Source: Sphyrna mokarran
Lineage: Eukaryota
DNA length: 64,000 nucleotides
Assembly: GCA_024679065.1 (NCBI GenBank)
Contig: JAGIQG010000023.1
Location: 10,044,001-10,108,000, forward strand
Direction: 5' to 3'
Part shown: positions 1,043 to 52,064 of the stretch, one piece after another
How positions within the stretch are numbered: the first letter of the stretch is position 1
How the letters are laid out: each line of letters begins with the position of its first letter
Notes under the pieces: model-generated
Told to the model about the DNA's origin: nothing
The model's database searches: none
The model's input: only the letters and a program-made list of their open reading frames with translations
Translations under genes and position numbers: made by a program

Positions 1043-1206
1043 TCAACCTCTTAACTCTTTAGGCTTTTGAATCTGCAGTGCTGCATATGTGACTCTTTCC
1101 TCATTGTTAGTGAAGCGGACAGTTTGCTTGCCATGTGTTTCTGCTGAGTTCCCTCGATTGCACTTTACATTGGCATACTCATTTTCTCTTCCAGAACTGC
1201 CAATTG
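1043..1206 (-). CDS. Cytoplasmic-tail exon with ITIM (VTYAAL) and NEYANV tyrosine motif; putative last exon of gene A
   Basis: Pyrimidine tract + cag acceptor (AG at 1208-1207); phase-1 frame [15 protein letters not shown]...[18 protein letters not shown]; phase matches the end of gene B's TM exon. Confidence 0.75.
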
Positions 1207-4200
1207 CTGCAAGATAGAAAATAAAGATCCAATTTATTTCCATTTAACTTGAATGGAGATTAATGGAGACATTAATTTCTAGATTATTGCAAATCAATTC
1301 ACAAGTGATCGCAGCATTTGGTAATATATCTCCAGCAGTGAAACACATCATTTGTCCCAACTCCATATAAACCTGTCCAAATAATCTCATCAAAATAACA
1401 TTCAAATCCTTTCTTCTCATTGCTTATCCAGCTTCTGTTTGAATGCATTTCAGCCATTTGCCTCAACTGTTCCCTGTGGTGGAAAAATCCACATCTGAAC
1501 ACTCTGGATAAAGATGTTTCTCTTGAATTCGCTGCTGGATGAATCTTTTTTATTCACACATTGAATGTGGGCATCACTGGCTGGGCCAACAACTGTTACC
1601 CATCCATAATTGGATTGAGAGGGGGAATTTTTGAATTGTATGTAGGCCAGACCAGGCACAAGCAGCAGATTTCCTCAGGGAAATATCTCTAAATGACATT
1701 AATGAAATGGAGTTTTTACTGGAATCAGCAATAGTTTTATGATCATCATTAGATCTTTAATTCCAGACTTTTATTGAGTTCTGCCTTGGTGGGATTTGAA
1801 CTCAAGTCCCCAGAGGATGATTCTGCATTTCTAGATTACTAATACAATATCACTTCATCAGTACCTGTTATCAATGACTATCCACTATTTATGGTCACTG
1901 TTTTTGGTCTTGCCTGCAATTGGAAACATCTTTGTTATCTCTTCCTGAATCTTGAAGATCTCAATCAGATCATTAATCAGAGAAATCCAGCTTGCTGAAT
2001 CTAGCCTTAAATTTTTAATTTTCCAAGGCAGATTGTGAAAAGGAATTTTGCTGCCATTCAGCGAAATTGTACCTCGCTTCCTCAGCAGACCAGATGAAAC
2101 TCTCGGGATTTTAAATCAACCTTTGTTTACACTTTAGTGAGGAAATCTGTCCCCCACAAGATGGCGCACTGGTACAGGGCACGCACCATTATAACTTTCC
2201 ATATTTTACATATAATTCTCATGCACCAATCACAAGTATACATTTGTTTAGAAATCATTAATATTCAATTACAGCAAATAGTTCTGACTACTTCATTTAT
2301 GTCAGGTGAATATAGTTAACCAGGTATATCCTCCGTATTTAAAGTTATAAGTTTATTTATTTGTTTGTCACAAGTAAGTTACTGTGAAATTCCCACAGTT
2401 GCAACAATTCAGTTCAATGTACAGGACCAGCATATCCTTCATAATGTGAACGGAAACTGGACCACCCAGAGGAAACCCACATAGATACAGGGAGAATGTG
2501 CAAATTCCATACAGACAGTGACCCAAGCCGGGAATTGAACCCAGGTCTCTGGTACTATGAAGAAACAGTGCTAACCATTTTCCTACTGTGCCGCCCCGTA
2601 TATGCTTGTCTAATTATAATGATTCATTACGAATGAAGTTTGCTCACATGATTCTACCATCTAAACATCCACACCTGTTATGGCTTGTGCTGGCTATCTG
2701 TAATTATGGCAACTGCACCGAAACATCTTCACAGCAGCTTCCCAATGAACTGTGCTGTAATTAATTCATAGGGGAACAGGACTGCGTTCAATGATGCAAA
2801 CCCCTTCAGAATGACAGCATCTTTCATATTACCATCTCACAGTAGAACAAGCATAGAATGTCCATATTTAATGGAAAGAAATACATTTATTTGAAGCCTT
2901 CAAAATAGTAAAATGCCCCTAAAACCATGGCAGCAACTTCAGGTACAAACTCAAATTAAACCAAGGAAGGAGATATTAGTGAAGGTAACCAAAATCTTTC
3001 AAAGGTTTAAGGCAAAGACATTTCAAAGAATGCCTTAAAGGAATAATGAAGTGATGAATTAGACAGAGAGGATTCCAGAGCTTCAGGACTAGATGGGTGA
3101 AGTTACAGCAAGGTCAATCTCTCATCACAGAACAGGTGGAATCATTAGCTTTTGATATCATTCTCTTATTCTCAATTTTTGTTTTGTTTTGGCAGTAATA
3201 CTTTAGATTTTACAGGAATTTCTGAGAACTTAAACTGACAAATGTCATTAAATCCAAAGTTGGGATGAAATAAGTAACAAGGTCTCATTTCTGAAGATAA
3301 AGCCAAGGTCTGTCTCCCTTTGTGCCCATCCAATGAGATTAAAGATTGGAGCCAATCTAAGGTGTAGTCCAGTCAAACAGCATTAATACATTTAAGGCAA
3401 ATCCACAGAAGCAAATGTGAGTGAAAGGAACTGTTCAGGTTGGATAAAAGAGGATGGGAAGAGGTTTGTGCTGAACATCAAACAGCCTACACCTGGTCCT
3501 ATTTCTTATTGTCTTATGGTTTCTATCATTCTAAACTCATGTTGAGTTTCATTTGCTCCCGAGTTCACAAGGTTATTTGTTGTTTCCAAACAACAGTAAC
3601 AACTTCAATATTCTTCTATGTTGAATACATTTATATTAGAAGGTGCAGGATATGAAAATCAGAGATGTACGTTGACTGCAGCAAATTAGGTTCTCTTTAT
3701 ATTCTTCAGAAATTGATTGGAACATAAAATGATTCCGGAGAATTTGCCTCTGATATAAAAGTAGAGAAATGGCAAACACCACAAGAATGGTCCCCAGCAC
3801 CCCGAGCACAAACCAGAGTGTGACACAGAGAGTAGGAAATGAGCAGTGTTGGACTTTATAATCATAGAAAGTTTGGTCCATCATGTCTGTTGTGTCTAAA
3901 AACCAGACCCCGCCCCCATAGTCCCATTCTCCAGCATTTTGTCCATTGGTCTGCAGATTATACAGACATCTTTGAAATGAGTTGAGTATCTTTGACTCTA
4001 TCACATTTTCAGAAATCTACAGCCGTCTGGGTGAAAACACTTTTCCTCATCTTTCCTCAAATCTTTCTACCAGTTTCTTTAAATTTATGCACCTCAGTCA
4101 CTGATTTTGCTGCTAAAACAAACTGGTCCTTCCCATCCACTCTATCTGGGCCCTTTACAATGCTGTGCATCTCAATCAATTCTCCCCTAAACCAAGCTGA

Positions 4201-7200
4201 ACAACCCTAGCTGATCAAACTTTTCTTCTTGGGTGTAATTTTCCAGTCCTGGCAATTTCCTCTCTGATAAATCATTTTTGTCATGAGGTAACCGGAACTG
4301 CACACAATACTCAAGCTGTGGCCTGGCTAATATCTTATATATAGTTCTAGCATTATCTTTCTGACCTTATATTACATCTCTTGGCTAATAAATGAAAGGA
4401 TTCCATGTGCCTTCTTAACCGCCTTATTGATCTATCCTGCTACCTTCAAAGACTTATGGACATTCATTCCAAGGATTTTCATTTCCTCTATACCCCCCAG
4501 CATCCTCCCATTTATTGTCTAACCATTTGCTTTGTTTGACCTGTTCAAATGTATCACCTCACACTTTTCTAGGTGGAATTCCATTTGACACTTTTCTGCC
4601 CATCCATTGATATCTACTTGCGGTCAATAGCAATCCGCCTTGCTATCTACAGCATTAGTAATTTTTATTGTATTACATATAAATCATTAATATATGCCAG
4701 AGAAAGCAGGAGACCTAGCACTGAGTATTGGAACCAGCCTTCCAGTCACAAAGACAGCCATCAACAATCATCCTTTGTTTCCTGCCATAATTGATTCTTG
4801 GCCATTTGTTCACAGAAGTGGGTTTTGAAATTATATAGCACTTTTCTCATCCTTTGGGTGGTCTAAAGAACTATACACTCTAGGAAATACTTTTAAAAAA
4901 TCACCAATGTTGTGATATAAAAGATGTGGCAACCAATCTGAACACAGCAAAACCTCAGAAACAGCAGTGAATTTTGACCAGATCAATAGTAGCCATTTCG
5001 TCAGTGCTTTCCTTGTCTGCTTTCTCTGTAAATAAGAAGTGACCTGCTGCGTATTTCCAGCAGCTTTTTCATCATGTTGATGTTTAACTGGTATTTTCTC
5101 ATCGTCATCATTGTAACCTCAGTATTTACGTTGGACAACAATTTCTACTCTTTCTATATGCCCCAATTATATTAGGGATTGTGAGTTTAACAGAAAAAGA
5201 AAAGACTTGGTTCCCACATGTAGATTCAAGCAAACACAAAACAGGTTTTAATGAAATGCTGCTTCTGCACTGTATCAAGTTGAAAACTAACAGTAACACA
5301 GCAGCCTGAGCACACACCCTAATGGTGTCACATCAAATCAACCCTTTTTAAAATTTGCATCTTTATTATGAAGTGAACACAACAACATCTCGCCAACATT
5401 CCTGATATGAGACGTATTGAAAAATGATGCCCAGTCTCCTGGATCGTCAGAGCCTGAACATATGACCCAAGATGTGTGTCAGGACCCTGCAGATGACTCA
5501 ACATGATGACCTCCATGAATTTCCTGGGATATTGGAACTTCCTGGGTCCCTCTGTGAAAATCTTCAGCTCTGGGTAAGAGCTTCAAACAATTCATTGGGG
5601 CTTACCTGGATAATTACCCAGGAAATATTAGACTGAAAGAATCAAGTTTTATTTCTGAGTAGACACAGAACTAACCCCTGAATAATCACACTGACTGCTG
5701 AACTCCCCCAATCTGCTGATGAATTCCCTGACATATCAACTATCACCCCACACTTCCGATTATCCTATCTGATCTTGTGACTAAGTCACAACCTGAGCCA
5801 ATCCGATTATTCTCTGTGAATATCCCTTGCACCCATCACTTCATAACCCAATGTCCAAATCTGATTAACCTCCAAACCAGCTACCCCTGCCAACCTGACA
5901 CAATTATTCATCTACTACTTCATCAACTTACACCTCACCCAACTGCCACCCTCTCAATCTACCACTTCACCTATCTGCAACCCCACCCATCTCACATACT
6001 TACGACACACCCATCTGTCTTCTCATCCACCTATCATTCTTGCCTCCAATTACCAACACATTTATACACCTCTCTCCCTATCCAGCTTACACCCTACCTA
6101 CCTGTGGTCCTATAGAGTTCCAATGGAGTTCTCCGAGGGATGCTGCACTTCACAGATCTGGAGAATCAGGACTCGGGAGATCAGACAAGAAATGTGGAGC
6201 TGAGTCGAGGGTGGAAAGCATTGAGTGGAATGGCAATCCAATTGCTGCTCTGTGACTGACCCAGGACAATAAATGACATCCATCCTTGTGCCAAACTTAT
6301 TAAAGAGGATTTAATCACTCACACAGAAGCCATATCACTTCAGCACTAACAATAAAAACAACATACCTTTCAGCAGGTTTGGAGTTTGGAATTAAGGAAT
6401 GTGTTGGTGATACTTCACAAGAATTTTCAGGTCCGACTGAAACGAGAAAAACAGCATTCAGATCAGCCTCATTTTCATTGTCGTTAAATGAGAGAGTCAC
6501 ATTGTCAAGTGGCACCTTGACCTGAGGGAGAATCTCTTTGAGGAAGCACCTCATCTTGGGATGTGGGCGTCTCTGTTGAGGTCAGCAATTATTGCCCATC
6601 CTTAATTGCCCTCAAGACAATGGTCATGAGATGCCTCTTAAATCATTTGTGGTGTAGGTACATCCACAGTGCTGTGAGGGAGAAAGCACCCATTGCATCT
6701 ATGCCACTCAAAGCCAAACCACCTTACTATTCTAACCCCATTTTCCAACATGTGGCCCATAGCTTTGTGTGCCTTGGCATCATGAGCGCACATCTAAATA
6801 ATTCTTAAATGTTAATGAGGGCCTGTAAGGCACCAAGGAAATTTGCCTATTCCTCCTGGAAGAGTTCCAGGCAAACATTTACATTTAGCTCAAAGGACAT
6901 GTGGGTCAGCAGTTCAACCAGACAATAGCACTGTCAACAGCAGAGCACAATCTCCGTGCTGTACAGGGATATTAACACCTTTATCGGAAAGAGAATTTGA
7001 ACTCACAACCCATTGGTTTCAGAAATCAGACTGCTACCAACTGAGCCCCTTCTAACACTGACATCCTTGAATATTAAACATTCAAACAGGTTAAAGTGCT
7101 CATTGATTCACAATTATAATTAGTGTTTATGTTAACACCGGATAATTCATGGAATTCTGAGAGTTTGAGCATCATTTTGTGATGCAAAGAATGAAATTTG

Positions 7201-9308: not shown

Positions 9309-12300
9309 GAGGGAACTTGGCCAAATGCAGATAGTATCTATTGATTGCTCTCACAGATAGTCATGATAGCAGATTAGTTAGTGACAAGCATTGGAGTGTG
9401 AACTGAGATGTTTGCTGAGATAATGGAGACATAAATATTTTTCCTAAAATCTAATCTTGACATGAATTCTCTGATACCGAAGGATCTGCCCTAGTTGCCA
9501 GTTGGAGCAGGGAATTTGACGCTCAGCCAAATCTTCATTCACAGCAGCAGGACTGGAGGATTCCAGCGATGGAAGGCTTTGCTGAACTCTGGCTATTGTC
9601 TGTATTTGTATTCAATATTCATTAGGAAGAACCATTAACATTAAGCTGTGAGTACTGTTTGAAGTCTAGGGTGGAATTTTATCACCTGGATTGAGCGAGA
9701 CTGAAAAACCTGCCCACGGTCAACAGACATTTCCATTGATTGCCCCACACCCACTCTGATACCACGGCGGGCAAGGCAGTAAAATTCCGAGGTAAATATC
9801 ATCCAAAGGTCATGAGCTGGGAGATAGAAGCTATCAGCTTCTCATTAACTGGGGAAACTGGCTTGAAGTGCTCTTTTTGTACTGAGTCCCTTTGTTTTTG
9901 AACTCAGCACTGGAGTCTGACTTCAAACGACAGTGGAGATTTAATAAGCAGAAGGAACTTACTACAGGAGAAGAAATGAGCTGTTGGTGAGTATCTGGTG
10001 AGTATTCGGGAAGTGGTGAAGGCCCAATGTCCAGGCATAGGGAGCATGGATGGTGTCCTTGCCAAATTGTTAACAAGGAGAGATTGGTCTAAGGTGAAAT
10101 AAATCTGACCCCATCTCTCTGGATCATTACTCTGAGCCTCTGAATTACAATTCTTCCAACATAATCATTGTTCTAACTGCCCTCTAGCTGCCAGACACTG
10201 CACTGCTGTGGAACCTCCAGACATCGGAGCTTATCCTCCCAGATAAAGTACCGATCAGTCAGTTCAGTTGAGAGTAATAAAGATAATCACAGAGAACAAT
10301 TTACCATCAGATATTTGTAGTCTTACAGGAAATATTGAAAGTAGCCCGGACTTAGCAATACCACAGCTGTACCATCCTGCATCTCCTGGGCGAAGATCCT
10401 CCATAGTAACGACAAATAATCCTTGTGTCTTCTTATCTGTGATTGAAATTCTCCCTCGCCATCCATCTGGATCGTCTGATTTTACCAAAACAGTGCACTG
10501 ACGACTCCAATATTTCACATGTGACTGGAACAATTTGTCATAGTGACAATCGATAGTGATCGCTCTTCCCAAAACTCCTGTTACATTATTTTTTGCCCAC
10601 AATGCACTTGGAGCTGAAAAGACAACAGGTCAAAAATTGAACTGAAAAAATTGTTTAATACAAACAGATATATTTTAAATAAGATTTAGCACTGTGTTCA
10701 GAGAAATATCTCCAATACATCTTCTAATGTATTTGAATACTTCCTTGATTGAGATCATTGGGCTCATTGAACATGTGCGCTCTGTGGATTGATAATTAAC
10801 AATCATATTGAGATTGCACACTAAGTCCTTTATAAAGCAAGACCTTAAGAGGTATCATTAATCTTTTAGTCCTGGTTGGGATTTGTTCTGTCCACCACAG
10901 GTTTATTTCCATTTTGTACAATAAAAGCACCATTTCTTCACATCCGCTTCCAGGAGTTACTGCATTCTCAAACAGCAATTGTTAGACAGCAAATTGTCTT
11001 CTCATGATCACTTTGCTCTTTGAGGGAGCTTATTGCTTATAAATTGGCGCTAAACTTCCTACATAACAACAAAGGCTCTGAATCAGCATTGATCAGAACA
11101 GACTTCAAAACTGTCTTGAAGTTGTGAAAAATTGAAAAATAAATGCAATTCTATTTTTATTAAAAATTGTTTTGGACGATCATTAGAACTAAGCCCGTGA
11201 GCAATTCAGTTAGACGTTAATTTAAAACTTAACTGAATTTCAGAAGCTTAAAGAGATATTTACCACTGTTGCTGAAATGTGTCACATAAGTGCAATCATT
11301 CTCTGATCTGTTGATCACTGACACAGTAACCATTTCACTGGATTTTTCTCCCTGGTTATTTGAGGCTGTGCAGTAGTATTGATGACGTTGCTGTGTGAAG
11401 GATTGACAACGTAGATCCAGTTTATTGGTGTCAGAAATCTTTGAATCTTCAGACGTGGTCTTTTCATACCATGTGTACTGTATGGGAAGTGATCCCTGGA
11501 CAGACTCACAGGAGATGGACACTGAGCCGCTTGAAAGTGAGGCATTTGGTGATGATAGAAATCTAAGCACAGGAACAGACACAGGTTCTGTGGAAATAAA
11601 AATTATTAACGGATTTTCACAATAATTTCATTGCAGTGTTAATTTAAAACTAGTTGTGACACTAATAAAAAGTTTTAAGTTTAAACTTTAAAAGTTTGAA
11701 TGTGAAAATGACCAAAAAATTACATAGTTTCATATTACCCCCAATATTTCTCCACCTCACTCACAATGTGAGGAGGAAGGGAAAGTGTTAGAGAGAGAGA
11801 GAAGCGTGGCCAAATGTAGGTTGTATCTATTTATTTCTCTCACAAACAGCAGATATTCATGACAGCAGATTAGTTAGTTGCAAGCACTGGAGTGTCACCT
11901 GAGATAGACTGCAGGAGATTGCTGAGATAATGGACACTTAAAAACCTATTCTTGCCCTGAATTCTCCGATATCGAGTGATCTGCTCCCGCTGCCAGTTGG
12001 AATAGGGAATTTGGCACTCTGCAAATCTCCATTCACAGCAATGGGACTGGATAATTCCAGCTACGGACAAGTTTGGTGAATTCCAGCCATTGTTTGTATT
12101 TAACATTCAACAGTATGCACAATTCAACATTTAAGTATGAGTATTGTCTCAAGTCTAAGGCAGGGTTTAATGGCCTCAAATCAAGGAGACTGGAAAATCC
12201 CACCCAAGGTCAACAGACATTTCCATTCTCTGCCCCACACCTGCTTCAATACCATGGCGGGCAAGGCAGTAAAATTCTGACATAAGCATCATCCAAAGGA

Positions 12301-15300
12301 CATGAGTTGGGAGATTGAAGGTCTCAACTGGCAGTAATTGAAATAGTTTAGGGGAAACTGAATTGAACTGCTCTTTTTATACTGAGTCCCTTTGTTTTGG
12401 AACTCAGCAAAGGAGTCTGACATCAACCAAGTGTGGAGGTTTAATGAGCTGAAGGAATTTACTACAGAGTTGTTGGTATCTGATCAGTATTCGGTAAATG
12501 GTCAAGGTCTATTACCCAGGCATAGGGGTATGGGTGGCATCCTTGCCAATTTTTTAACCAGAAGAGCATGGTCCAAGGTGCAATAAATCTGCCCCCATCT
12601 CTCTGGATCATTACTCTGAGCCTCTGAATTCCAATTCCTCCAACATAATCATTGTTCTAACTGCCCTCTAGCTGCCAGACACTGCACTGCAGCAGGGCCT
12701 TGGTATATCATAGAACATAGAACATTACAGCGCAGAACAGGCCCTTTGGCCCTCGATGTTGCACCGACCAATTAAGAAAAAACAATGACCCTCTAACCTA
12801 GACCATTCCCTTTTCATCTATAAACCTATCCACTGACCTCTTAAACGCCTCCAAACTTGGTGCATCTACAACAGCAGCAGGCAGGGCATTCCATACCCTT
12901 ACCACCCTCTGGGTAAAGAAACTACCTCTGACATCCGTCCTATAACTACCAGCCCTTAATTTAAAGCTATGTCCCCTCGTGCTAGCTTTCTCCATCTGAG
13001 GAAAAAGGCTATCACTGTCCACCCTATCTAAACCTCTAATCATCTTATATGTTTCGATAAGGTCCCCTCTTAGCCGCCTCTTTCTAACGAAAACAACCTC
13101 AAATCCCTCAGCCTCTCTTCATAAGACCTGCCCTCCATACCAGGCAACATCCTGGTAAACCTCCTCTGTACCCTCTCCAATGCCTCCACATCTTTCTTAC
13201 AATGTGGGGACCAGAACTGTACACAATACTCCAAGTGCGGCCGCACTAGAGTTTTGTACAGTTGCAACATGATGTTGCGGCTCCGAAATTCAATCCCCCT
13301 ACCAATAAAAGCCAAGACTCTGTATGCCTTCTTAACAACCTTATCGACTTGATTGCCAACTTTCAGGGATCTATGCATATATACACCAAGAACCCTCTAT
13401 TCATCAACACTATTAAGAGATCTACCATTAGCCCTATACTCTACACATTTGTTATTCCTGCCAAAGTGAATTACCTCACACTTTTCCACATTGAACTCCA
13501 TTTGCCACCTCTCGCCCAGCTCTGCAACTTGTCCAAGTCTCTCTGCAAACTGTAACACCCCTCTTCACTATCTACCACTGCTCCAACTTTGGTGTCATCC
13601 GCAAATTTACTAATCCATCCTTCTATACCCTCATCCAGATCATTTATAAAAATTACAAGATCGGAGCTGTCAATGTCTCCTCCCAGATAAAGCAGCAATC
13701 AGACATACTGAGCTTAATAAAGATAATCACTGAGAACAATTTACCTTCAGATATTTGTAGATTTACAGGAAATATTGAAAGGAGGCCGAGCTTATCAATA
13801 CCACAGCTGTACCATCCTGCATCTCCTAAGCGAAGATCCTCCATCGTAACAACAAATAATCCTTGTGTCTTGTTATCTGTGATTGACATTCTCCCTCGCC
13901 GTCCATCTGGATCATCTGATTTTACCAAAACAGAGCACTGACGACTCCAATATTTCATATGTGACTGGGACAATTTGTCATAGTGACATTCGATAGTGAT
14001 CGCTCTTCCCAAAACTCCTGTTACATTATTTTTTGCCTGCAATGTACTTGGAGCTGAAAAGACAACAGGTCAAAATTGAACTCAAAATATTTGTTTAATA
14101 CAAACAGATATATTTCAAAGGGATTTACCACAGTGTTCAGAGAAATGTCTGCAAAACATCTCCGAATGCAATTGAATACTTCCTTGTTTGAGATCGCAGG
14201 TCTCATTGAATATGTGCTATCGTGGATTGATAATTAAAGAACTATTTTGATGTAGTATACTCATCACTTCATGAAGCAAGACCTTGAGAGGTTCCAATAA
14301 TCTTTTAGTCTGATTGTGACCTGTTGTATTCACCGCAGGCATGTGGTTATTGTTTATTTTCATTTTGTACAATAAAAGAACAGCTCCTTCACATCCTGCT
14401 CCTGGAGTTATTATGTTCTCAAACAGCAATTGTCAGATAACAGATTGTCTGCTCATGATCACATTGGTCTATGCGGGAGCTCATTGCTTATAAATTGTGC
14501 TGAGCTTTCCACATCATAACAAAGGATCGGAATCAGTTCCAGCACTGACCAGAACAGACGTTAAAACTGTCCTGAAGTTGTGAAAAGTGAAAAATAAATG
14601 TAATTCAGTTCTATTAAAATTAATTTGAATGACCAATAGAACTAAACCAGTAAGCATTTCAGACAGACATTAATTTAAAAATTAGTTGAAATTTTTGAGG
14701 CTTAAATGGATATTTACCAATGTTGCTGATTTGTGTTAAATAACTGCAATCATTCTCTGAAATGTGGATCACTGACACAGTAACCATTTCACTGGATTTG
14801 TTTCCCTGGTTATTTACGGCTGTGCAGTAATATTGATGATGTCGCTGTGTGAAGGATTGACAATCTAGATCCAGTTTATTGGTGTCAGAGATCTTTGAAT
14901 CTTCAGACGGAGTTTTTTCATACCATGTGTATCGAATGGGAAGTGATCCCTGGACAGACTCACAGGAGATGGACACTGAGCGCCCAGAACATGAAGCATT
15001 TGGTGGTGATAAAAATTCAAGTTCAGGGACAGACACAGGTTCTGTGGGAAAAAAAACAATTATTAACGGATTTTTACAGTAATTTCATTGCAGCGTTAAT
15101 GTAGTTTGCTTGTGACTCAAATAAAGATTTAACTATCAACCTTAAAATTTTACACTTTAGAATGACCAAAAAATTAAATAGTTTTATATTACCAGTATTT
15201 GTCTACCTCACCCAGGATTTGAGGGGAGAAGGAGAGAGAGAGAGAGATTGAAGTAGGAACTTGGCCAAATATAGGTAGTACCTATTGCTTGCTCTCATGG

Positions 15301-18300
15301 AAAGCAGATATTCATAATAGCAGATTAGTTAGTGACAAGCATTGGAGTGTGACCTGAGATAAACTGTGGATGTTTGCTGAGAGAAAGGAGACTCAAATAT
15401 CTTTCTTAAAATCGAATCTTGACCTGAATTCTCCGATATCAAGCGATCTGCCCTCGCTGCCAGTCGGAATAGGGAATTTGGTGCTCAGCCAAATCTCCAT
15501 TCACAGAAGCAGAACTGGAATATGATAGCTTCAGATGAGTTTTGGGAATTCCAGCCATTGTTTATATTTGTATTAACATTCAAAATTAAGTAACATTAAA
15601 CATTTAGATGCGAGTACTATTTCAAGTCTCGGACCGGGTTTCATGGCCTCAAACAGCCAGACTGGAAATTCCCAACCAAGGTCAACAGACATTCCCGTTG
15701 TCTGCCCCACATCTGCTCCAATACCACGACGGGCAAGGCAGTAAAATTCCAATGGAAGAGTCATCCAAGTGACATGATTTGGGAGGTAGAAGCTTTCTGC
15801 TGTCAGCAATTGAATAATTGTGGAAACTAGCTTGAATAGCTCTTTTTCTATTGAGTCTCTTTGTTTTTGGACTCAGCACGGGAGTCTGACTTCAAGCGTG
15901 GAGGTTTAATGAGTTGAAGAATTTACTACAGGAGAAGAAGTGAGCTGTTGGCGATTATTTGGTGATTGTTCGGGAAGTAGTGAAGATCTATTGTCCAGGC
16001 AACAGAAGCATAGATGGGGTCCTTGCCAACTTGTTAACCAGGACAGCATGGTCCAAGGTGCAATAAATCTGCCCCCATCTCTCTCTGGATCATTACTCTA
16101 TACTTCTGAATTACAATTCCTCCAACATAATTATTGTTCTAACTCCTCTCTAGCTCCCAGACACTGCACTGCTGCAGAGCCTCGGGATATCGGAGCTGTC
16201 AATGTCTCCTCCCAGATAAAGCAGCAATCACACATATTGAACGTAATAGAGAAAATCACTGAGAACAATTTACCGTCAGATATTTGTAGATTTACAGGAA
16301 ATATTGAAAGTAGCCCTGGCTTATCAATACCACAAGTGTACCATCCTGCATCTCCTGGGCGAAGATCCTCCATTGTAACAACAAATAATCCTTGTGTCTT
16401 GTTATCTGTGATCGACATTCTCCCTCGCCGTCCATCTGGATCATCTGATTTTACCAAAACAGAGCACTGACGACTCCAATATTTCACATGTGACTGGGAC
16501 AATTTATCAAAGTGACAAGCGATAGCAATCGCTCTTCCCAAAACTCCTGTTACATTATTTTTTGCCCGCAATGCACTCGGAGCTGAAAAGACAAGAGATC
16601 GAAAATTGATCTCAAAATATTTGTTTCATACAAACAGATACACTTCAATGGGATTCACCATAGTGTTCAGAGAAATGTCTGCAATACATCTCCTAATGCA
16701 ATTGAATACTTCCTTGTTAGAGATCGCTGGGCTTATTGAATGTGTGCTCCCTGTCGATTGATAATGAAACAACTATTTTGATGTAGTATACTAAACCCTT
16801 TATAAAGCACGACCTTGAGAGGTTCCAATAATCTATTAGACCTCGTTGGGATCTGTTGTATTCACTACTGGCACGTGGTTATTGTTTATTTTCATTTTGT
16901 ACAATAAAAGATTAGTTCCTTCACATTGTGCTCCTGGAGTTATTATATTCTCAAAGAGCAATTGTCAGACAACAGATTGTCTGCTCATGATCACATTGCT
17001 CTTCCCATGAGCTCATTGCTTATAAATTGTGCTGAGCTTCCCACATCATAACAAAGGATCGGAATCAGTTCCAGTACTGACCAGAACGGACATTAAAGCT
17101 GTCCTGAAGTTGTGAAAAGTGAAAAATAAATGCAATTCAGTTCTATTAAAATTAATTTGAATGACTAATAGAACTGAACCAGTAAGCATTTCAGACAGAC
17201 ATTAATTTAAAAATTAGTTGAAAATTTGAGGCTTTAATTGATATTTACCAATGTTGCTGATTTGTGTTAAATAACTGCAATCATTCTCTGAAATGTGGAT
17301 CACTGACACAGTAACTATTTTACTGGATTTGTTTCCCTGGTTATTTGAGGCTGTGCAGTAATATTGATGATGTTGCTGTGTGAAGGATTGACAATCTAGA
17401 TCCAGTTTATTGGTGTCAGAGATCTTTGAATCTTCAGACGGAGTTTTTTCATACCATGTGTATCGAATGGGAAGTGATCCCTGGACAGACTCACAGGAGA
17501 TGGACACTGAGCCCCCAGAACATGAGGCATTTGGTGGTGATAAAAATTCAAGTTCAGGGACAGACACGGGTTCTGTGGGAACAAAAACAATTATTAACGG
17601 ATCTTTACAGTAATTTCATTGCAGTGTTAATGTACGTTTGCTTGTGACTCAAATAAAGATTTAACTATCAACTTTAAAACTTTAAACTTTAGAATGACCA
17701 AAATATTAAATAGTTCAATATTAACAGTATTTTTCTAACTCACCCAGGATTTGAGAAGAGAAGAAGAGAGAGAGAGATTGCAGTAGGAATTGGCCAAATA
17801 TAGGTAGTACCTATTGATTGCTCTCATGGAAAGCAGATGCTCATGATAGCAGATTAGTTAGTGACAAGCATTGGAGTGTGACCTGAGATAAACTGTGGAT
17901 GTTTGCTGAGAGAAAGGAGACTCAAATATCTTTGTTAAAATCGAATCTTAACCTGAATTCTCCGATATCGAGCGATCCGTCCTTGCTGCCAGTTCGAATA
18001 GGGAATTTGGTGCTCAGCCAAATCTCCATTGACAGCAGCAGGACTGGATAATTCCAGCTGTGGATGAGTTTTGGGAATTCCAGTCATTGATTGTATTTGT
18101 ATTAACATTCAAAATTAAGTAACATTGAACATTTAGATGTGAGTACTATTTCAAGTCTAGGGCAGAGTTTTATGGCTCAAACAGACAGACTGGAAATTCC
18201 CAACCAAAGTCAACAGACATTTCCGTTGTCTGCCCCACATCTGCTCCAATACCACGATGGGCAAGGCAGTAAAATTCCAATGGAAATATCATCCAAAGGA

Positions 18301-21300
18301 CATGATTTGGGAAATAGAAGCTATCTGCTGTCAGCAACTGAATAATTGGGGAAACTGGTTTGAACTGCTCATTTTGTGTTGAGTCTCTTTGTTTTTGGAC
18401 TCAGCACTGGAGTCTGACTTCAACCAATGTGGAGGTTTAATGAGTTGAAGAATTTACTACAGGAGAGGAAGTGAGATGTTGGCGATTATCTGGTGATTAT
18501 TCGGGAAGTAGTGAAGATCTGTTGTCCAGGCATGGGAAGCATAGATGGGGTCCTTGCCAACTTGTTAACCAGGAGCGCATGGTCCAAGGTGCAATAAATC
18601 TGCCCCCATCTCTCTGGATCATTACTCGGAACCTCTGAATTACAATTCCTCCAAAATAATCATTGTTCTAACTGCCCCCTAACTCCCAGACACTGCACTG
18701 CTGCAGAGCCTCGGGATATCAGAACTGTCAATGTCTCCTCCCAGATAAAGCAGCAATCAGACATATTGAGCCTAATAGATAAAATCACTGAGAACAATTT
18801 ACCATCAGATATTTGTAGCTTTACAGGAAATATTGAAAGTAGCCCTAGCTTATCAATACCACAGGTGTACCATCCTGCATCTGCTGGGCGAAGATCCTCC
18901 ATAGTAACAACAAATAACCCTTGTGTCTTGTTATCTGTCATTGACATTCTCCCTCGCCGTCCATCTGGATCATCTGATTTTACCAAAACAGAGCACTGAT
19001 GACTCCAATATTTTACATGTGACTGGGACAATTTATCATAGTGACAATCGATAGCGATCGCTCTTCCCAAAACTCCTGTTACATTATTTTTTGCCCGCAA
19101 TGCACTCGGAGCTGAAAAGACAAGAGATCAAAAATTGAACTCAAAATATTTGTTTCATACAAACAGGTACACTTCAATGGGATTCACCACAGTGTTCAGA
19201 GAAAAGTCTGCGATACATCTCCTAATGCAATTGAATACTTTCTTGTTAGGGGTCGTTGGGCTTATTGAATATGTGCTCCCCGTGGATTGATAATGAAACA
19301 ACTATTTTGATGTAGTATACTAAACCCTTTATAAAGCAAGATCTTGAGAGGTTCTAATATTCTATTAGACCTTGTTGGGATCAAATATATTCACTGCAGG
19401 CATGTGGTTATTGTTTATTTTCATTTTGTACAATAAAAGATCAGTTCCTTCATATCCTGCTCCTGGAGTTATTGTATTCTCAAACAGCATTTGTTAGATA
19501 ACAGATTGTCTGCTCATGATCACATTGCTCTTCCCATGAGCTCATTGCTTATAAATTGTGCGGAGCTTCCCACATCATAACAAAGGCTCGGAATCAGTTC
19601 CAGCACTGACCAGAATGGACTTTAAAACTGTCCTGAAGTTGTGAAAAGTGAAAAATATATGCAATTCAGTTCTGTTAAAATTAATTTGAATGACTAATAG
19701 AACTGAACCAGTAAGCATTTCAGACAGACATTAATTTAAAAATTAGTTGAAAATTTGAGGCTTTAATTGATATTTACCAAAGTTGTTGATTTGTGTTAAA
19801 TAACTGCAATCATTCTCTGAAATGTGGATCACTGACACAGTAACTGTTTTACTGGATTTGTTTCCCTGGTTATTTGAGGCTGTGCAATAATATTGATGAT
19901 GTTGCTGTGTGAAGGATTGACAATCTAGATCCAGTTTATTGGTGTCAGAGATCTTTGAATCTTCAGACGGGGTTTTTTCATACCATGTGTATCGAATGGG
20001 AAGTGATCCCTGGACAGACTCACAGGAGATGGACACTGAGCCCCCAGAACATGAGGCATTTGGTGGTGATAAAAATTCAAGTTCAGGGACAGACACGGGT
20101 TCTGTGGGAACAAAAACAATTATTAACGGATCTTTACAGTAATTTCATTGCAGTGTTAATGTATGTTTGCTTGTGACTCAAATAAAGATTTAACTATCAA
20201 CTTTAAAACTTTAAACTTTAGAATGACCAAAAAATTATATAGTTCTATATTACCAGTATTTCTCTAACTCACCCAGGATTTGAGGAGAGAAGAAGCGAGA
20301 GAGAGATTGCAGTAGGAATTGGCCAAATATAGGTAGTACCTATTGATTGCTCTCATGGAAAGCAGATGCTCATGATAGCAGATTAGTTAGTGACAAGCAT
20401 TGGAGTGTGACCTGAGATAAACTGTGGATGTTTGCTGAGAGAAAGGAGACTTTAATATCTTTCTTAAAATCCAGTCTTGACCTGAATTCTCTGATGTTGA
20501 GCGATCCACACTCGCTGCCTGTTGGTATAGGGAATTTGGTGCTCAGCCAAATCTCCATTGACAGCAGTGGGACTGGATAATTCCAGCTGTGGATGAGTTT
20601 TGGGAATTCCAGTCATTGTTTGTATTTGTATTAACATTCAAAATTAAGTAACATTGAACATTTAGATGTGAGTACTATTTCAAGTTTAGAGCAGAATTTT
20701 ATGGCCTCAAACAGACAGACTGGAAATTCCAAACCAAAGTCAACAGACATTTCCGTTGTCTGCCCCACACCCGCTCCAAAACCACGATGGGCAAGGCAGT
20801 AAAATTCCAATGGAAATACCATCCATAGGACATGATTTGGGAAATAGAAGCTATCTGCTGTCAGCAACTGAATAATTGGGGAAACTGGTTTGAACTGCTC
20901 ATTTTGTGTTGAGTCTCTTTGTTTTTGAACTCAGCACGGGAGTCTGACTTCAACCAATGTGGAGGTTTAATGAGTTGAAGCATTTACTACAGGAGAGGAA
21001 GTGAGATGTTGGCGATTATCTGGTGATTATTCGGGAAGTAGCGAAGATCTGTTGTCCAGGCATGGGAAGCATAGATGGGGTCCTTGCCAACTTGTTAACC
21101 AGGAGAGCATGGTCCAAGGTGCAATAAATCTGCCCCCATCTCTCTGGATCATTACTCGGAACCTCTGAATTACAATTCCTCCAAAATAATCATTGTTCTA
21201 ACTGCCCCCTAACTCCCAGACACTGCACTGCTGCAGAGCCTCGGGATATCAGAACTGTCAATGTCTCCTCCCAGATAAAGCAGCAATCAGACATATTGAG

Positions 21301-24300
21301 CCTAATAGATAAAGTCACTGAGAACAATTTACCATCAGATATTTGTAGCTTTACAGGAAATATTGAAAGTAGCCCTAGCTTATCAATACCACAGGTGTAC
21401 CATCCTGCATCTGCTGGGCGAAGATCCTCCATAGTAACAACAAATAATCCTTGTGTCTTGTTATCTGTCATTGACATTCTCCCTCGCCGTCCATCTGGAT
21501 CATCTGATTTTACCAAAACAGAGCACTGATGACTCCAATATTTCACATGTGACTGGGACAATTTATCATAGTGACAAGCGATAGCGATCGCTCTTCCCAA
21601 AACTCCTGTTATATGATTTTTTGCCCGCAAAGCACTTGGGGCTGAAAAGACAAGAGATCAAAAATTGAACTCAAAATATTTGTTTCATACAACAGATACA
21701 CTTCAATGGGATTCACCACAGTGTTCAGAGAAATGTCTGCGATACATCTCCTAATGCAATTGAATACTTCCTTGTTAGAGATCGTTGGGCTTATTGAATG
21801 TGTGCTCCCCGTGGATTGATAATGAAACAACTATTTTGATGTAGTATACTAAACCCTTTATAAAGCAAGACCTTGAGAGGTTTCAATAATCTATTAGACC
21901 TTGTTGGGGTCTGTTATATTCACTGCAGGCATGTGATTATTGTTTATTTTCATTTTGTACAATAAAAGATCAGTTCCTTCACATCGTGCTCCCGGAGTTA
22001 TTATATTCTCAAACAGCAATTGTTAGATAACAGATTGTCTGCTCATGATCACATTGGTCTTTGTGGGAGCTCTTTGCATATAAATTGTGCTTAGCTTCCC
22101 ACATCAAAACAAAGACTCGGAATCAGTTCCAGCACTGACCAGCGCGGATTTTAAAACTGTTCTGAAGTTGTGAAAAAAGAAAAATAAATGCAATTCAATT
22201 CTATTAAAATTAATTTGAATGACCAATAGAACTGAACCAGTAAGCATTTCAGACAGACATTAACTTAAAAATTAGTTGAAATCTTTGAGGCTTAAATGGA
22301 TATTTACCAATGTTGCTGATTTGTGTTAAATAACTGCAATCATTTTCTGAAATGTGGATCACTGACACAGTAACCATTTCACTGGATTTGTTTCCGTGGT
22401 TATTTAAGGCTGTGCAGTAATATTGATGATGTTGCTGTGTGAAGGATTGACAATCTAGATCCAGTTTATTGGTGTCAGAGACCTTTGAATCTTCAGACGG
22501 AGTTTTTTCATGCCATGTGTATCGAATGGGAAGTGATCCCTGGACAGATTCACAGGAGATGGACACTGAGCGCCCAGAACATGAGGCATTTGGTGGTGAT
22601 AAAAATTCAAGTTCAGGGACAGACACAGGTTCTGTGGGAAAAAAACAATTATTCACAGATTTTTACAGTAATTCATTGCAGTGTAATGTACGTTTGCTTG
22701 TGACTCAAATAAAGATTTAACTATCAACTTTAAAACTTTACACTTTATAATGACAAAAAAATTAAATAGTTTTATATTAGCAGTATTTCTCTACCTCACC
22801 CAGGATTTGAGCAGAGAAGCAGAGAGAGAGAGATGGCACTAGGAACTTGGCCAAATGGATGAGTTTTGGGAATTCCAGTCATTGTTTGTATTTGTATTAA
22901 CATTCAAAATTAAGTAACATTGAACATTTAGATGTGAGTACTATTTCAAGTCTAGAGCAGAGTTTTATGGCCTCAAACAGCCAGACTGGTAATTCCCAAC
23001 CAAAGTCAACAGACATTCCCGTTGTCTGCCCCACACCTGCTCCAATACCACGACGGGCAAGGCAGTAAAATTCAAATGGAAGCATCATCTAAAGGACATG
23101 ATTTGGGAGATAGAAGCTATCTTCTGTCAGCAACAGAATAATTGCGGAAACTGGCTTGAACTGCTCTTATTGTATTGAGTCGCTTTGTTTTTGGACTCAG
23201 CACTGGAGTCTGACTTCAAACAAGTCTGGAGGTTTAATGAGTTGAAGAATTTACTACAGGAGAAGAAGTGAGCTGTTGGCGATTATCTGGTGATTATTTG
23301 GGAAATAGTGAAAATCTATTGTCCAGGCATCGGAAGCATAGATGGGCTCCTTGCCAACTTGTTAACCAGGAGAGTGTGGTCCAAGGTGCAATAAATCTGA
23401 CCCTATCTCTCTGGATCATTACTCTGAACTTCTGAATTACAATTCCTCCAACAAAATCATTGTTCTAACTCCTCTCTAGCTCCCAGACACTGCACTGCAG
23501 CAGAGCCTCGAGATATCGGAGCTGTCAATGTCTCCTCCCAGATAAAGCAGCAATCAGACATATTGAGCGTAATAGAGATAATCACTGAGAACAATTTACC
23601 TTCAGATATTTGTAGATTTACAGGAAATATTGAAAATAGCCCTGGCTGATCAATACCACAGGTGTACCATCCTGCATCTCCTGGGCGAAGATCCTCCATT
23701 GTAACAACAAATAATCCTTGTGTCTTGTTATCTGTCATTGACATTCTCCCTCGCCGTCCATCTGGATCATCTGATTTTACCAAAACAGAACACTGACGAC
23801 TCCAATATTTCACATGTGACTGGGACAATTTATCATAGTGACAATCGATAGCGATCGCTCTTCCCAAAACTCCTGTTACATTATTTTTTGCCCACAATGC
23901 ACTCGAGGCTGAAAAGACAAGAGGTCAAAAATTGAACTCAAAATATTTGTTTAATACAAACAGATACATTTCAATGGGATTTACCACAATGTTCAGAGAA
24001 ATGCCTGCGATACATCTTCTAATGCAATTGAATACTTCCTTGTTAGAGATCATTGGGCTTATTGAATGTGTGCTCCCTGTCGATTGATAATGAAACAACT
24101 ATTTTGATATAGTATACTAAACCCTTTATAAAGCAAGGCCTTGAGACGTTCCAATAATCTTTTAGCCCTCGTTGGGATCTGTTGTATTCACTGCAGGCAT
24201 GTGGTTATTTTTTATTTTCATTTTGTACAAAAAAAAATCAGTTCCTTCACATCCTGCTCCTGGAGTTATTATATTCTCAAACAGCAATTGTCAGATAACA

Positions 24301-27300
24301 GATTGTCTGCTCTTGACCACATTGCTCTTTGTGGGAGCTCTTTGCATATAAATTGTGCTTAGCTTCCCACATCATAACAAAGGATCGGAATCAGTTCCAG
24401 CACTGACCAGAACGGATTTTAAAACTGTTCTGAAGTTGTGAAAAGTGAAAAATAAATGCAATTCAATTCTATTAAAATTAATTTGAATAACCAATAGAAC
24501 TGAACCAGTAAGCATTTCAGACAGACATTAATTTAAAAATTAGTTGAAATCTTTGAGGCTTAAATTGATATTTACCAATGTTGCTGATTTGTGTTAAATA
24601 ACTGCAATCATTCTCTGAAATGTGGATCACTGACACAGTAACCGTTTCACTGGATTTGTTTCCGTGGTTATTTAAGGCTGTGCAGTAATATTGATGATGT
24701 TGCTGTGTGAAGGATTGACAATCTAGATCCAGTTTATTGGTGTCAGAGATCTTTGAATCTTCAGACGGAGTTTTTTCATACCATGTGTACTGAATGGGAA
24801 GTGATCCCTGGACAGACTCACAGGAGATGGACACTGAGCCCCCAGAACATGAGGCATTTGGTGGTGATAAAAATTCAAGGTCAGGAACAGACACGGGTTC
24901 TGTGGGAAAAAGACTATCATGAATGGATTTTCACAGTATTTTCATTGCAGTGTTAATATACATTTGCTTGTGACTCAAATTAAATAAATATTGAACTTTC
25001 AACTTTAAAACTTTAAACTTTAGAATGACCAAAACATTAAATAGTTTCATATTTCTCCACCTCACCCAGGATATGACGAGGAAGAGAAAGTGTTAGAGAG
25101 AGAGACAGACAGAGAGAGAGAGACAGAAAGAGAGAAAGAAGGCAGTAGGAGCTTGGCCAAGTGCAAGTAGCGTAGATGAGGTCTTTGACAATTTGTTAAC
25201 CAGGAGACTGTGGTCGAAGGTGCCCATCTCTCTGGATCATTTCTCTGAGCCTCTACATCACAATTCCTCTGTTAAAAAGCCTGAGAGCACCATTTTAAAT
25301 TCCAACCAGTTTATTTGATAGTAAACCCATAAGCTTTCGGAAACACTGTTCCTTCATCAGGAACCTTCCACACACCGGACAAAGGAACAGTGTTTTCAAA
25401 TGCTTGTGGGTTTACTATCAAATAAACTGATTGGACTTTAAACTGGTGTTGCGAGACTTTTTACTGTGTTTACCCCAACCCAACGCTGGTACCTCCACAT
25501 CATTACAATTCCTTCAACCGAATCATTGTTCTAACTGCCCTCTAGCTGCCAGACTCTGCACTGCCACGAAGCCTCCAAACGTTGGAGCTGTCATTGTCTC
25601 CTCCCTGATAAACACTGATCATTCATTTCAGTTGAGAGTAATAAAGTTAAAATCTGAGAAAAATTTACCGTCAAATATTTGTAGCTTTACAGGAAATATT
25701 GAAAGGAGGCCGGGCTTATCAATACCACAGCTGTACCATCCTGCATCTCCTGGGCGAAGATCCTCCATAGTAACAACAAATAATCCTTGTGTCTTGTTAT
25801 CTGTGATTGACATTCTCCCTCGCCGTCCATCTGGATCATCTGATTTTACCAAAACAGAGCACTGACGACTCCAATATTTCACATGTGACTGGGACAATTT
25901 GCCATAGTGACAATCGATAGTGATCGCTCTTCCCAAAACCCCTGTTACATTATTTTTTGCCCACAATGCACTCGGAGCTGAAAAGACCGAAGGTCAAAAA
26001 TTAAACTGACAATAATTGCTCAATATAAACAGGTATATTTCAATGGTATTGACCATTGTATCAGAGAAATGTCTGCAATACATCTTCTAATGCAATTGAA
26101 TTCTTCCTTGTTTGAGATTGTTGCATTCATTCAAAATGTGCTCCCCGCGGATTGGTAATTGAACAACTATTTTGATGTTGTATACTAAACCCTTTATAAA
26201 GCAAGACCTTGAGAGGTTCCATTAATCTTTTATTCCTGGCTGGGATCTGTTGTATTCATCGTAGGTATGTGGTTATTTTTTATTTTCATTTTGTACAATA
26301 AAAACATGGCATCTTCACCCACCCAAGCTCCCGAGTTATTATATTCTCAAACAGCATTTGTCAAATAGCAGATTGTCAGCTCATGATCACATTGCTCTTT
26401 GAGGGAGCTTATTGCTTATAAATTGATGTTGAGCTTCCTACATTACAACAAAGGCTCTGAATCAGTTCCAGCATTGATCAGAATGGACTTTAAAATGTCC
26501 TGAAGTTATGAACAGTGAAAAATAAATGCAATTCAATTCTACTAAAATTAATTTGAATGACCAATAGAACTAAACCAGTGAGCAATTCAGATAGGCGTTA
26601 ATTTAAAAATTAGTTGAAACTTTTGAAGCTTAAAGTGATATTTACCAATTTGTGCTAAATAACTGCAATCATTCTTTGAAATGTGGATCACTAACACTGT
26701 AACCATTTCACTGGATTTTTCTCCCTGGTTATTTGAGGCTGTGCAGTAATATTGATGATGTTGCTGTGTGAAGGATTGACAATGTAGATCCAGTTTATTG
26801 GTGTCAGAGATCTTTGAATCTTCAGACGGAGTTTTTTCATACCATGTGTATCGAATGGGAAGTGATCCCTGGACAGGCTCACAGGAGATGGACACTGAGC
26901 CCCCAGAACATGAGGCATTTGGTGGTGATAAAAATTCAAGTTCAGGAACAGACACGGGTTCTGTGGGGAAAAAGACAATCATTAATGGATTTTCACAGTA
27001 ACTTCATCAACATCGAAGGCCGAAGGGCCTGTTCTGCGCTGTAATGTTCTATGATCTATGTTCATTGCAGTGTTAATGTATACCTACTTGTGACACAAAT
27101 TAAATAAAGATTGAACTTTCAACATTAAAACTTTAAACTTGACCAAAAAATTAAATAGTTTCATATTTCCAGGATTTCTCCACCTCACCCAAGATGTGAG
27201 GAGGAACAGAAAGTGTTAGAGGGAAAGAGAGAGATATATCAGTGCGAACTTGGCTGAATGCAATTGTATCTTTTGATTGCTCTCACGAATAGCAGATATT

Positions 27301-50159: not shown

Positions 50160-50289
50160 CTCTACCTCCTGTCCAGCATTTGCAAGGCAGAAGTCAGGAG
50201 TGTGATGGAATATTCTCCACTTGACTGGGTGAGTGCAGCTCCAACAGAAGTCAGCGAATTGCCTGGATTTGAAAATCCTTTGATATCAT

Positions 50290-52027: not shown

Positions 52028-52064
52028 ATGTGGATTCTTATTCTTTTCATCTTTTCTCTGCCTG
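52028..52064 (+). CDS. Gene B leader exon ([12 protein letters not shown])
   Basis: ATG at 52028, G|gtgagt donor. Confidence 0.9.

Follow-up and report, generated by a model that had tools for sequence, protein, structure and literature searches.

The stretch of DNA analyzed here, which we call the window, is 64,000 nucleotides (nt) long and comes from the genome of Sphyrna mokarran (GenBank assembly GCA_024679065.1, contig JAGIQG010000023.1, positions 10,044,001 to 10,108,000); all coordinates below count from its first letter. The window contains no N bases, and it holds two paralogous receptor genes of the immunoglobulin (Ig) superfamily arranged head to head, gene A on the minus strand and gene B on the plus strand, with 11.4 kb between their ATGs. 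Our subject is gene A, which has exons for twenty Ig domains and a transmembrane (TM) exon disabled by three lesions. Its paralog B keeps the TM exon intact.

All exons of A lie on the minus strand, in the order leader, V1, then ten C2-type exons (C1 to C10) alternating with nine V exons (V2 to V10), stalk, TM remnant and last exon. The leader exon (40611-40647, ATG at 40647) ends with one extra base at the donor G|gtgagt, and V1 (37656-37976, 321 nt, phase 1-1) encodes a pIgR/CD300-like V-set domain with a KYWC..C cysteine pair. The array that follows reads C1 (32304-32627), V2 (31328-31636), C2 (29552-29875), V3 (28206-28514), C3 (26646-26960), V4 (25669-25977), C4 (24576-24899), V5 (23600-23908), C5 (22308-22631), V6 (21333-21641), C6 (19778-20101), V7 (18803-19111), C7 (17249-17572), V8 (16274-16582), C8 (14718-15041), V9 (13745-14053), C9 (11264-11587), V10 (10305-10613) and C10 (8751-9074). 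The V exons of the array are 309 nt long and the C2-type exons 324 nt, save C3, which is 315 nt long with an in-frame gap of 9 nt. The stalk exon (6367-6436, 70 nt) has the acceptor tcag and ends in phase 2 with AG left over, reading ..CCT GCT GAA AG|GTATGT (donor AAG|GTATGT, GT at 6366-6365). The TM remnant, as aligned to B, spans 3741-3819 and its hydrophobic frame can still be read. The last exon (874-1206) has its acceptor AG at 1208-1207 and a predicted polyadenylation (poly(A)) signal, ATTAAA, at 879-874.

Gene B, on the plus strand, has a leader exon (52028-52064), a V1 exon (54731-55051), a single C2-type exon (58200-58523), a stalk exon (59947-60016) and an intact TM exon of 89 nt (62630-62718, with AG at 62628-62629 and GT at 62719-62720). 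Its tail exon lies past the end of the window, probably by more than 1.3 kb.

By the homology of their domains, both genes belong to the modular domain immune-type receptor (MDIR) family of elasmobranchs, with pIgR/CD300-like V domains and FCRL-like C2 domains. The V exons of A match the Pfam V-set model (E 6.5e-10 to 1.1e-12), and the C2 exons give weak Pfam matches to Ig_2/Ig_3/Ig_C17orf99. Among solved structures the best match of V1 is pIgR (7jg2_E, E 1.5e-41 over four stretches), followed by CD300f/CLM-1; for the C2 exon there is a match to FCRL5 (9loc_A, E 1.4e-42 over five stretches). Skate MDIR3 is 56% identical to V1 (E 1e-38), and its C2 domain is 69% identical to C10 (E 8e-45). A full HMMER scan with the C8 exon, our query for the representative search, returns 778 proteins at E<=0.001, the best of them a 1254-aa protein with six matching stretches and 85% identity. 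Word-indexed searches with this protein and with a 418-aa relative yield 47 and 115 named proteins; with few exceptions they belong to sharks, skates, rays and a chimaera. The clearnose skate Modular domain immune-type receptors 2, 3 and 5 are among the matches; the relatives carry NCBI names such as 'polymeric immunoglobulin receptor-like', 'Fc receptor-like protein 5', 'titin-like' and 'uncharacterized'. The closest relative that we found is LOC144511684 of Mustelus asterias, whose stalk and tail are 68% and 73% identical to those of A; the protein that represents its group has 85% identity to the C8 exon.

One account describes the MDIRs as receptors of a multigene family, activating as well as inhibitory, with CD300, TREM, FCAR and pIgR as their relatives (PMC3031540). 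Gene A has the CD300/pIgR/TREM-like V-set domain of the family and combines such V modules with C2/I-type domains homologous to those of the skate MDIRs (ten V and ten C2). It does not have the type I membrane architecture, that is, either an uncharged TM with a tail carrying immunoreceptor tyrosine-based inhibitory motifs (ITIMs) or a charged TM with a short tail. We file A as a derived, TM-less MDIR because of its homology and not because of any TM feature. A survey of 144 family proteins with a V-domain motif, using a crude hydropathy rule on the last 260 residues, sorts 63 as having a TM and ITIMs, 41 as having a charged WxVGRW-type TM and a short tail, 30 as having no TM, and 10 as unclear. 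Skate models have a recurring TM-less end, ..VTSHGKWGAGC.FSCL, and two Mustelus multi-module models (1254 and 1314 aa) are also without a TM.

Lesions in the transmembrane exon and tail of gene A

The three lesions that a preliminary description of this DNA had reported in the TM exon of A are all present in a pairwise alignment of A 3600-4010(-) with B 62400-62830(+). At the acceptor, AG has become AC (3819-3818), A reading tgtgtcacAC|TCTGG and B tgtgtcacAG|TCTGG. A 5-column gap follows TCTGGT in A at about 3812/3811, and a 21-column gap at about 3743/3742 takes out the donor that B has in ..GACAAGG|GTGAGT. The TM exon thus has two gap runs, both in A, when about 0.9 of any kind would be expected from the A-B intron rate. 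The 30-nt TM core occurs only once in the window (0 matches expected by chance).

Which of the two genes has changed can be read from the relatives. The TM exon of B is open when entered from a phase-2 stalk, and exits in phase 1. TM-bearing relatives keep ..SL(I/V)Y(I/V)V.G.. and ..RRRIDK, precisely where A has its 5-nt and 21-nt gaps; in Mustelus asterias P0151 the TM region reads ..SLIYIVLGVLGAILVVFAVSLLLYRRRIDK, and P0017, P0021, P0168 and P0169 have close variants. B agrees with these relatives at the positions of the gaps in A. The 5-nt gap therefore means that family residues have been lost and the frame shifted relative to the stalk, and the 21-nt gap that the conserved ..IDK end and the donor have both been lost; the hydrophobic frame of A runs on into unrelated residues. 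Because B and relatives from other elasmobranchs keep the residues that A is without, the lesions of A are derived, a polarity that comes from protein comparisons. By the same comparisons the working AG, frame and GT of B are the ancestral state, and it is very unlikely that B gained all three. The family alignment thus supports a TM exon in A that is disabled, by states that are derived.

The TM segment of B has a peculiarity of its own. It reads VLGRLGANLV, where seven relatives have GVLG(A/G) and an eighth GVPGA, so that an Arg and an Asn stand inside an otherwise inhibitory-type TM exon. These residues could be a step towards an adaptor-pairing (activating) form, or they could reflect relaxed constraint in B.

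The cytoplasmic tail of A has also changed. The preliminary description held that a B-type TM exon would lead into the ITIM frame of the last exon. Its arithmetic is right, and the frame stops at 1045-1043, but this is not the frame of the family. Relatives read ..QQLA(A/V)(L/V)E(E/G)SIVYA(N/S)V.. in a single frame, whereas in A the piece QLAVLEE (1206-1186) is in the phase-0 frame and EYANV..VTYAAL (1180-1046) is in the next one. The split means that one base is missing between about 1185 and 1178, before the first ITIM, and the frameshift puts an N where relatives carry I/L/T/M, two residues before the first ITIM tyrosine.

The distance between membrane and motif would also be short. From the aromatic residue at the end of the TM to the first ITIM tyrosine there are 30-34 residues in 43 of the 53 TM-to-ITIM instances of the relatives and 53-58 in the other 10, with none shorter, but a direct TM-to-1206 join in A would leave only 16. 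The spacing in the relatives means that an 18-residue juxtamembrane segment (e.g. GTNSILSHRRDKTLHDNQ) must be encoded by a small exon of its own. When family peptides are aligned locally to A 3760-1150 and B 62690-64000, no convincing match to such an exon appears, and a splice-aware scan gives none either (94 and 53 candidates, with best scores of 24 and 21). A hidden Markov model (HMM) of eight peptides, run against the six frames of the window, gives a single match, at -2.2 bits (37457-37428). Two look-alikes were dropped: an 18-residue juxtamembrane-like stretch at about 1362-1309, which the HMM misses and whose splice sites and length do not fit, and a segment at A 3580-3542 / B 62911-62931, which has stops in every usable frame of the B copy. 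If the lost exon had 53 nt (an inferred length, which corresponds to 18 residues and runs from phase 1 to phase 0), its loss and the 1-nt deletion together keep the frame. The short tail can then be read in two ways: in one, the A/B lineage had already re-engineered its tail when A lost the anchor; in the other, the two changes add to the decay of A.

The ITIM-frame TGA at 1045-1043 precedes a stretch of 36 codons that is still open and ends ESEMAIYNNITH followed by TAG (about 970-932). This end matches the C-terminus of the family (..ESEMTIYANFTH in P0169), so that the tail of A is also truncated by the TGA relative to most relatives. The truncation may predate A, because the Mustelus model leaves the alignment at the same point.

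Integrity and history of the ectodomain

The exons upstream of the lesions are in a very different condition. All 20 Ig exons of A are open, have a length that is a multiple of three and are flanked by AG and GT, and all 42 splice dinucleotides of the Ig exons are kept. None of the 22 ectodomain exons (leader, 20 Ig exons and stalk) is disrupted; the lesions are confined to the TM and cytoplasmic part. This is not the picture of a unitary pseudogene, where disabling mutations are spread over the coding exons.

Moreover, the exons are better conserved than the introns between them, with a mean identity among the modules of A of 0.92-0.94 for exons and 0.80-0.84 for introns. Small gap runs with a length not divisible by three (not 3n), counted among modules in MAFFT alignments of diverged introns and thus possibly inflated, number 62 in 3538 intron columns and 0 in 633 exon columns, where 11.1 would be expected (P about 1.5e-5). 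The intron between stalk and TM exon is 0.841 identical between A and B and has 25 gap runs in 2513 aligned bases, 16 of them not 3n. From that rate, 4.8 frame-breaking indels would be expected in the exons that A and B share one to one (leader, V1, last C2 and stalk; 752 nt), and there are none (P about 0.008). The pooled ratio of nonsynonymous to synonymous differences (pN/pS) among the modules of A is 0.45 for V2-10 and 0.56 for C1-10, where the pairwise pooling is not independent; it is 0.71 between A-V1 and B-V1, which are 92% identical in nucleotides. In a relative-rate comparison with Mustelus P0151 as outgroup, A has kept slightly more than B in both domains: 84 of 106 V1 residues in A and 81 of 106 in B, and 94 of 107 residues in C10 of A and 88 of 107 in C1 of B. 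Taken on these comparisons, the ectodomain of A is not decaying along with its TM exon, and the evidence supports its being under constraint.

The cysteines of the Ig domains vary along the array. V1 keeps the extra cysteine pair of the pIgR/CD300 type (KYWC..C), V2-V10 read KYWS..QC and have one extra cysteine each, and the C2 exons of A have two extra cysteines (NASC.. and ..NDCSY), except that C9 is without the first.

The array has grown in more than one phase. Introns of the old modules (1-3, 9 and 10) are about 76-85% identical, with a lower 64-70% for the V4-to-C4 intron, and those of a younger group (modules 4-8) are 89-97% identical, which makes this group younger than the A/B split (84%). 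The first C2 exon of A shares its upstream intron with the C2 exon of B, and the tenth shares with the only C2 exon of B its 3′ end and its downstream intron. This sharing of flanks with B means that the extra modules were inserted within an ancestral V-C2 gene. The preliminary description had tied the expansion of the ectodomain to the loss of the TM exon, and this does not hold: LOC144511684 (1458 aa, six V and six C2) and LOC116987004 (2193 aa) are expanded and keep both a TM and ITIMs.

The introns hold other pieces of coding-like sequence. Eight of the nine C-to-V introns of A contain a segment homologous to the C-terminus of a TM-less Mustelus 'titin-like' model, P0152 (28919-28809, 26346-26242, 24260-24171, 21992-21903, 19463-19374, 16934-16845, 14402-14313 and 10951-10859, all on the minus strand). 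The segment is either an alternative terminal exon of the gene family or an artefact of the P0152 model. Just 3′ of the stalk (A 6065-6241; B 60142-60278) the sense strand is homologous to the C-terminus of another TM-less Mustelus model, P0001, with the match in A at 6191-6099(-) and a TGA in that frame. The antisense of 6065-6241 is homologous to the last 45 residues of the TM-bearing P0151, so the same stretch has been used in both orientations by automatic models of a related species. The stretch directly upstream of both TM exons looks derived from a retroelement.

Elsewhere in the window, open reading frame (ORF) fragments that resemble the reverse transcriptase of retroelements without long terminal repeats (non-LTR) are found at 35355-36740 (-), 12798-13698 (-), 48223-48489 (-) and 50202-50849 (+). 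The V1-C1 and V9-C9 introns of A are long because one such fragment sits in each. Positions 1-300 hold a short tandem repeat, with an ORF at 15-371 that encodes a repeating peptide.

The predicted product and its alternatives

What could such a gene make? The preliminary description proposed that the stalk is spliced directly to the last exon, and the sequence bears out the reading that it gave. Joining the phase-2 stalk (6436-6367) to the acceptor at 1208-1207 (ttctatcttgcag|CAATTG) gives a protein that ends SNWQFWKRK, with a TGA at 1181-1179. The proposed 2155 aa is reproduced by summing exon lengths (37 + 321 + 9x309 + 9x324 + 315 + 70 + 25 = 6465 nt), and the figure is such a sum, from exons that were searched apart and not as one joined model. 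A stop within the last exon does not usually trigger nonsense-mediated decay, and for a stalk-to-1206 transcript, with its stop at 1181-1179 in the last exon, we would not expect it.

The interval between stalk and last exon offers little else. We call an acceptor strong if it has at least 14 of 17 pyrimidines, a pyrimidine at -3 and no AG within 12 nt upstream. Only 2 of the 355 AGs in the interval pass this rule, 3751-3750 and 1208-1207, and both give short, TM-less, non-hydrophobic ends. The first of them lies in the TM remnant: CAG at 3750-3751 (-) follows 14/17 pyrimidines where B has CGG, so that a substitution in A has created a strong-looking acceptor, and entry there would lead to a TM-less tail and then a stop. 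Among phase-2, open, hydrophobic candidates between 6366 and 1207, no other TM-like exon was found; such candidates start at only two acceptors in the 5.16-kb interval, AG 3971-3970 and a marginal one at 5318. We reject the idea that the AC acceptor is rescued by AT-AC (U12-type) splicing, as the intron starts with GTATGT. On either predicted join, stalk to 1206 or stalk to 3749, there would be a frame that starts with a signal peptide and ends before any TM. Shorter isoforms could also be made in frame, because every Ig exon is symmetric (phase 1-1).

We lean, with slightly better than even confidence, towards A being a maintained MDIR-family gene that probably makes a secreted, TM-less chain of up to 2155 aa with a signal peptide. 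A and B would have arisen by an inverted (head-to-head) duplication. Of the ten V+C2 exon pairs that A carries, the five of modules 4-8 were duplicated later than the A/B split. The anchoring and signaling part of A would have decayed, with the TM exon losing acceptor, frame and donor, the juxtamembrane exon becoming undetectable, and a frameshift arising before the first ITIM. Leader, 20 Ig exons and stalk would meanwhile have been kept open, spliceable and conserved. The splice partner of the stalk would now be one of the two strong acceptors downstream, 1208-1207 or the newly created CAG at 3751-3750, with a short non-hydrophobic end in both cases. The preliminary view that an inhibitory membrane receptor had turned into a soluble protein stands for the gene itself, where the TM exon is disabled, its state derived, the ectodomain constrained, and no other TM-like exon found; that A is transcribed, uses the predicted stalk junction and yields a secreted product with some function is what we infer from its structure.

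Several points weigh against a maintained, secreted product. The pN/pS values, 0.45-0.77, are only moderately below one, and the bias of variable sites by codon position is weak (17/14/27 and 26/19/30). The intron gap counts to which the exons are compared may be too high, for the reason given above. A search with the C10 exon for transcript-derived fragments returned 4 proteins of 148-183 aa, none of them near-identical to the window or from its species, so that the sequence downstream of C10 in a transcript is not seen in any of them. As for the relatives without a TM, they are automatic gene models, and some are clearly partial. A cryptic exon at 3969-3677 or 3969-3671 would in principle restore both the TM and the ITIM frame. 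Finally, the age of the lesions cannot be set, and if they are recent, an intact ectodomain says little.

That A is dead or dying is an alternative which we hold doubtful but take seriously. The loss of the TM would have made the product useless, with the locus silent or its transcripts non-functional, and the ectodomain would simply not yet have been disabled. Receptor clusters of the MDIR kind turn over by birth and death. A dying gene would account for the three TM-exon lesions, the failure to detect a juxtamembrane exon and the frameshift in the tail, for pN/pS values that are not very low, and for a C10 search that gave no near-identical protein. But two indels have fallen in about 93 nt of TM exon and no frame-breaking one in 6.4 kb of ectodomain exons, and the intact splice dinucleotides of the Ig exons, the clearly better conservation of exons over introns, and the smaller change of V1 and C10 in A than in B relative to Mustelus all speak against simple decay.

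It is unlikely, in our judgment, that A is still membrane-bound. This could come about if AG 3971-3970 were used, so that the exon starts at 3969, and paired with a weak donor after 3677 or 3671, if the stalk were skipped and the TM frame entered at AG 3855-3854, or if a TM exon lay outside the window. AG 3971-3970 is the sole AG that gives a phase-2 entry to the open TM frame. The frame 3969-3636 is open (ORF 3636-4004) and includes the hydrophobic TM stretch, an exon of 293 or 299 nt would combine phase-2 entry with phase-1 exit, and the part of the TM core that can still be aligned has only 4 of 23 residues changed relative to Mustelus in the remnant, as many as in B. The sites themselves are poor, however. 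The acceptor has a weak context (AAG, 11/17 pyrimidines), and the two frame-restoring donors, GCA|GTCAAC and AAC|GTACAT, compare badly with the donor consensus MAG|GTRAGT. The exon would also add some 50 residues upstream of the TM that come from the apparently retroelement-derived stretch, which is present in the intron of B too. AG 3855-3854, to which the preliminary description had pointed as a cryptic site, does exist and is a phase-1 entry; it has 10/17 pyrimidines and the wrong phase for the phase-2 stalk, and fits only if the stalk is skipped and a phase-1 C2 donor is used.

We give a similarly low probability to the main products being shorter. Alternative terminal exons or poly(A) sites within introns would then stop transcription within the array or directly past the stalk, and the transcripts would encode truncated secreted chains in place of the 2155-aa form. 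The C-terminus of P0152 is indeed homologous to the segment in 8/9 C-to-V introns (28919-28809 and 14402-14313 are examples), and that of P0001 to A 6191-6099(-), directly after the stalk. Against this, P0152 and P0001 are automatic models, the P0001-type copy in A has its in-frame TGA and one P0152-type copy has a stop near its end, and the conservation of the segment among modules follows from duplication alone.

It is very improbable that the ten-module array or the lesions are errors in the assembly of a tandem repeat. The array does repeat every 2-3.4 kb, and identity between modules 6 and 7 reaches 97-99%. But every module is distinct (exon identity 88-99%, intron identity 64-97%, private indels and insertions, such as the piece of retroelement between V9 and C9), A has just one copy of the TM region, and the window is free of N.

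Known soluble receptors and what gene A may add

Within its own family, A is most usefully compared with the skate MDIRs and with the largest models from other species. Skate MDIR2/3/5 show the same two domain types in modular combinations, but the skate proteins that we found have 416-701 aa, and MDIR3 has a TM and ITIMs, whereas A has 20 Ig domains and no usable TM exon. LOC116987004 of Amblyraja radiata and LOC144511684 of Mustelus asterias have, like A, many V and C2 repeats; unlike A, they keep a TM and an ITIM tail with a juxtamembrane segment of 30-34 residues. No giant or secreted MDIR was found in the literature searched, which did not include the original MDIR description.

Soluble paralogs are known from other receptor families. 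LILRA3 and LAIR2 are described as genome-encoded soluble paralogs that lie next to membrane paralogs, lack a TM and are secreted, and LAIR2 as antagonizing its membrane receptor (PMC3031540). Like A, each is a separate gene beside a membrane paralog and has no TM region, and A has such a close membrane-bound paralog at the same locus in the head-to-head gene B, whose TM exon is intact and whose tail is outside the window. On the other hand, LILRA3 and LAIR2 are small and belong to another receptor family, and their secretion and function are experimental, where those of A are predicted. The same account presents the carp SITR as a soluble receptor encoded in the genome, which combines a V/C2-type domain with a V domain that resembles those of CD300/MDIR and lacks both a TM and ITIM/ITAM (PMC3031540). 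SITR is, like A, a soluble-type protein related to MDIR/CD300 with no TM. It differs in having two domains, in its teleost lineage, in that its expression and secretion have been shown, and in giving no sign of an origin by decay of a TM exon.

The comparison with pIgR and its secretory component is attractive, and it has clear limits. V1 matches pIgR domains best, and the secretory component is a soluble chain of several V domains. But pIgR consists of V-type domains only, has a TM and a sorting tail, and is released by cleavage of a TM protein, while A alternates V with FCRL-like C2 domains, has no usable TM and an ITIM-type tail, and would be secreted directly. In the shark J chain, moreover, the part of the sequence where the mammalian J chain binds the secretory component is reported as poorly conserved, so that pIgR-type transport is doubtful there (PMC4279169).

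The decoy, agglutinin and secretory-component roles that have been suggested for the product of A are speculation. Nine V domains with one unpaired cysteine each (KYWS..QC) could form covalent links. Even so, we consider it decidedly improbable that A is an expressed, secreted 20-domain chain in plasma or mucus that acts as a multivalent binder of Ig polymers or microbes, as a secretory-component counterpart or an agglutinin.

The claim has its bounds. Soluble paralogs of such receptors are well known, and large and TM-less family models already stand in the public annotations of sharks and rays; because relatives without a TM, and others equally large, have been annotated elsewhere, the novelty is moderate. 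What A adds is a 'fossil' TM exon beside an intact membrane paralog, B, together with an extreme number of domains. Should A prove to be expressed, it would stand as a clear example of an inhibitory-type Ig receptor that became a soluble, germline-encoded protein when its anchor exon decayed, and comparative immunology would gain a concrete candidate soluble multi-Ig factor of elasmobranchs. A secreted pIgR-like chain in sharks would draw attention precisely because pIgR-type transport has been doubted in these animals, at least in the account cited (PMC4279169).

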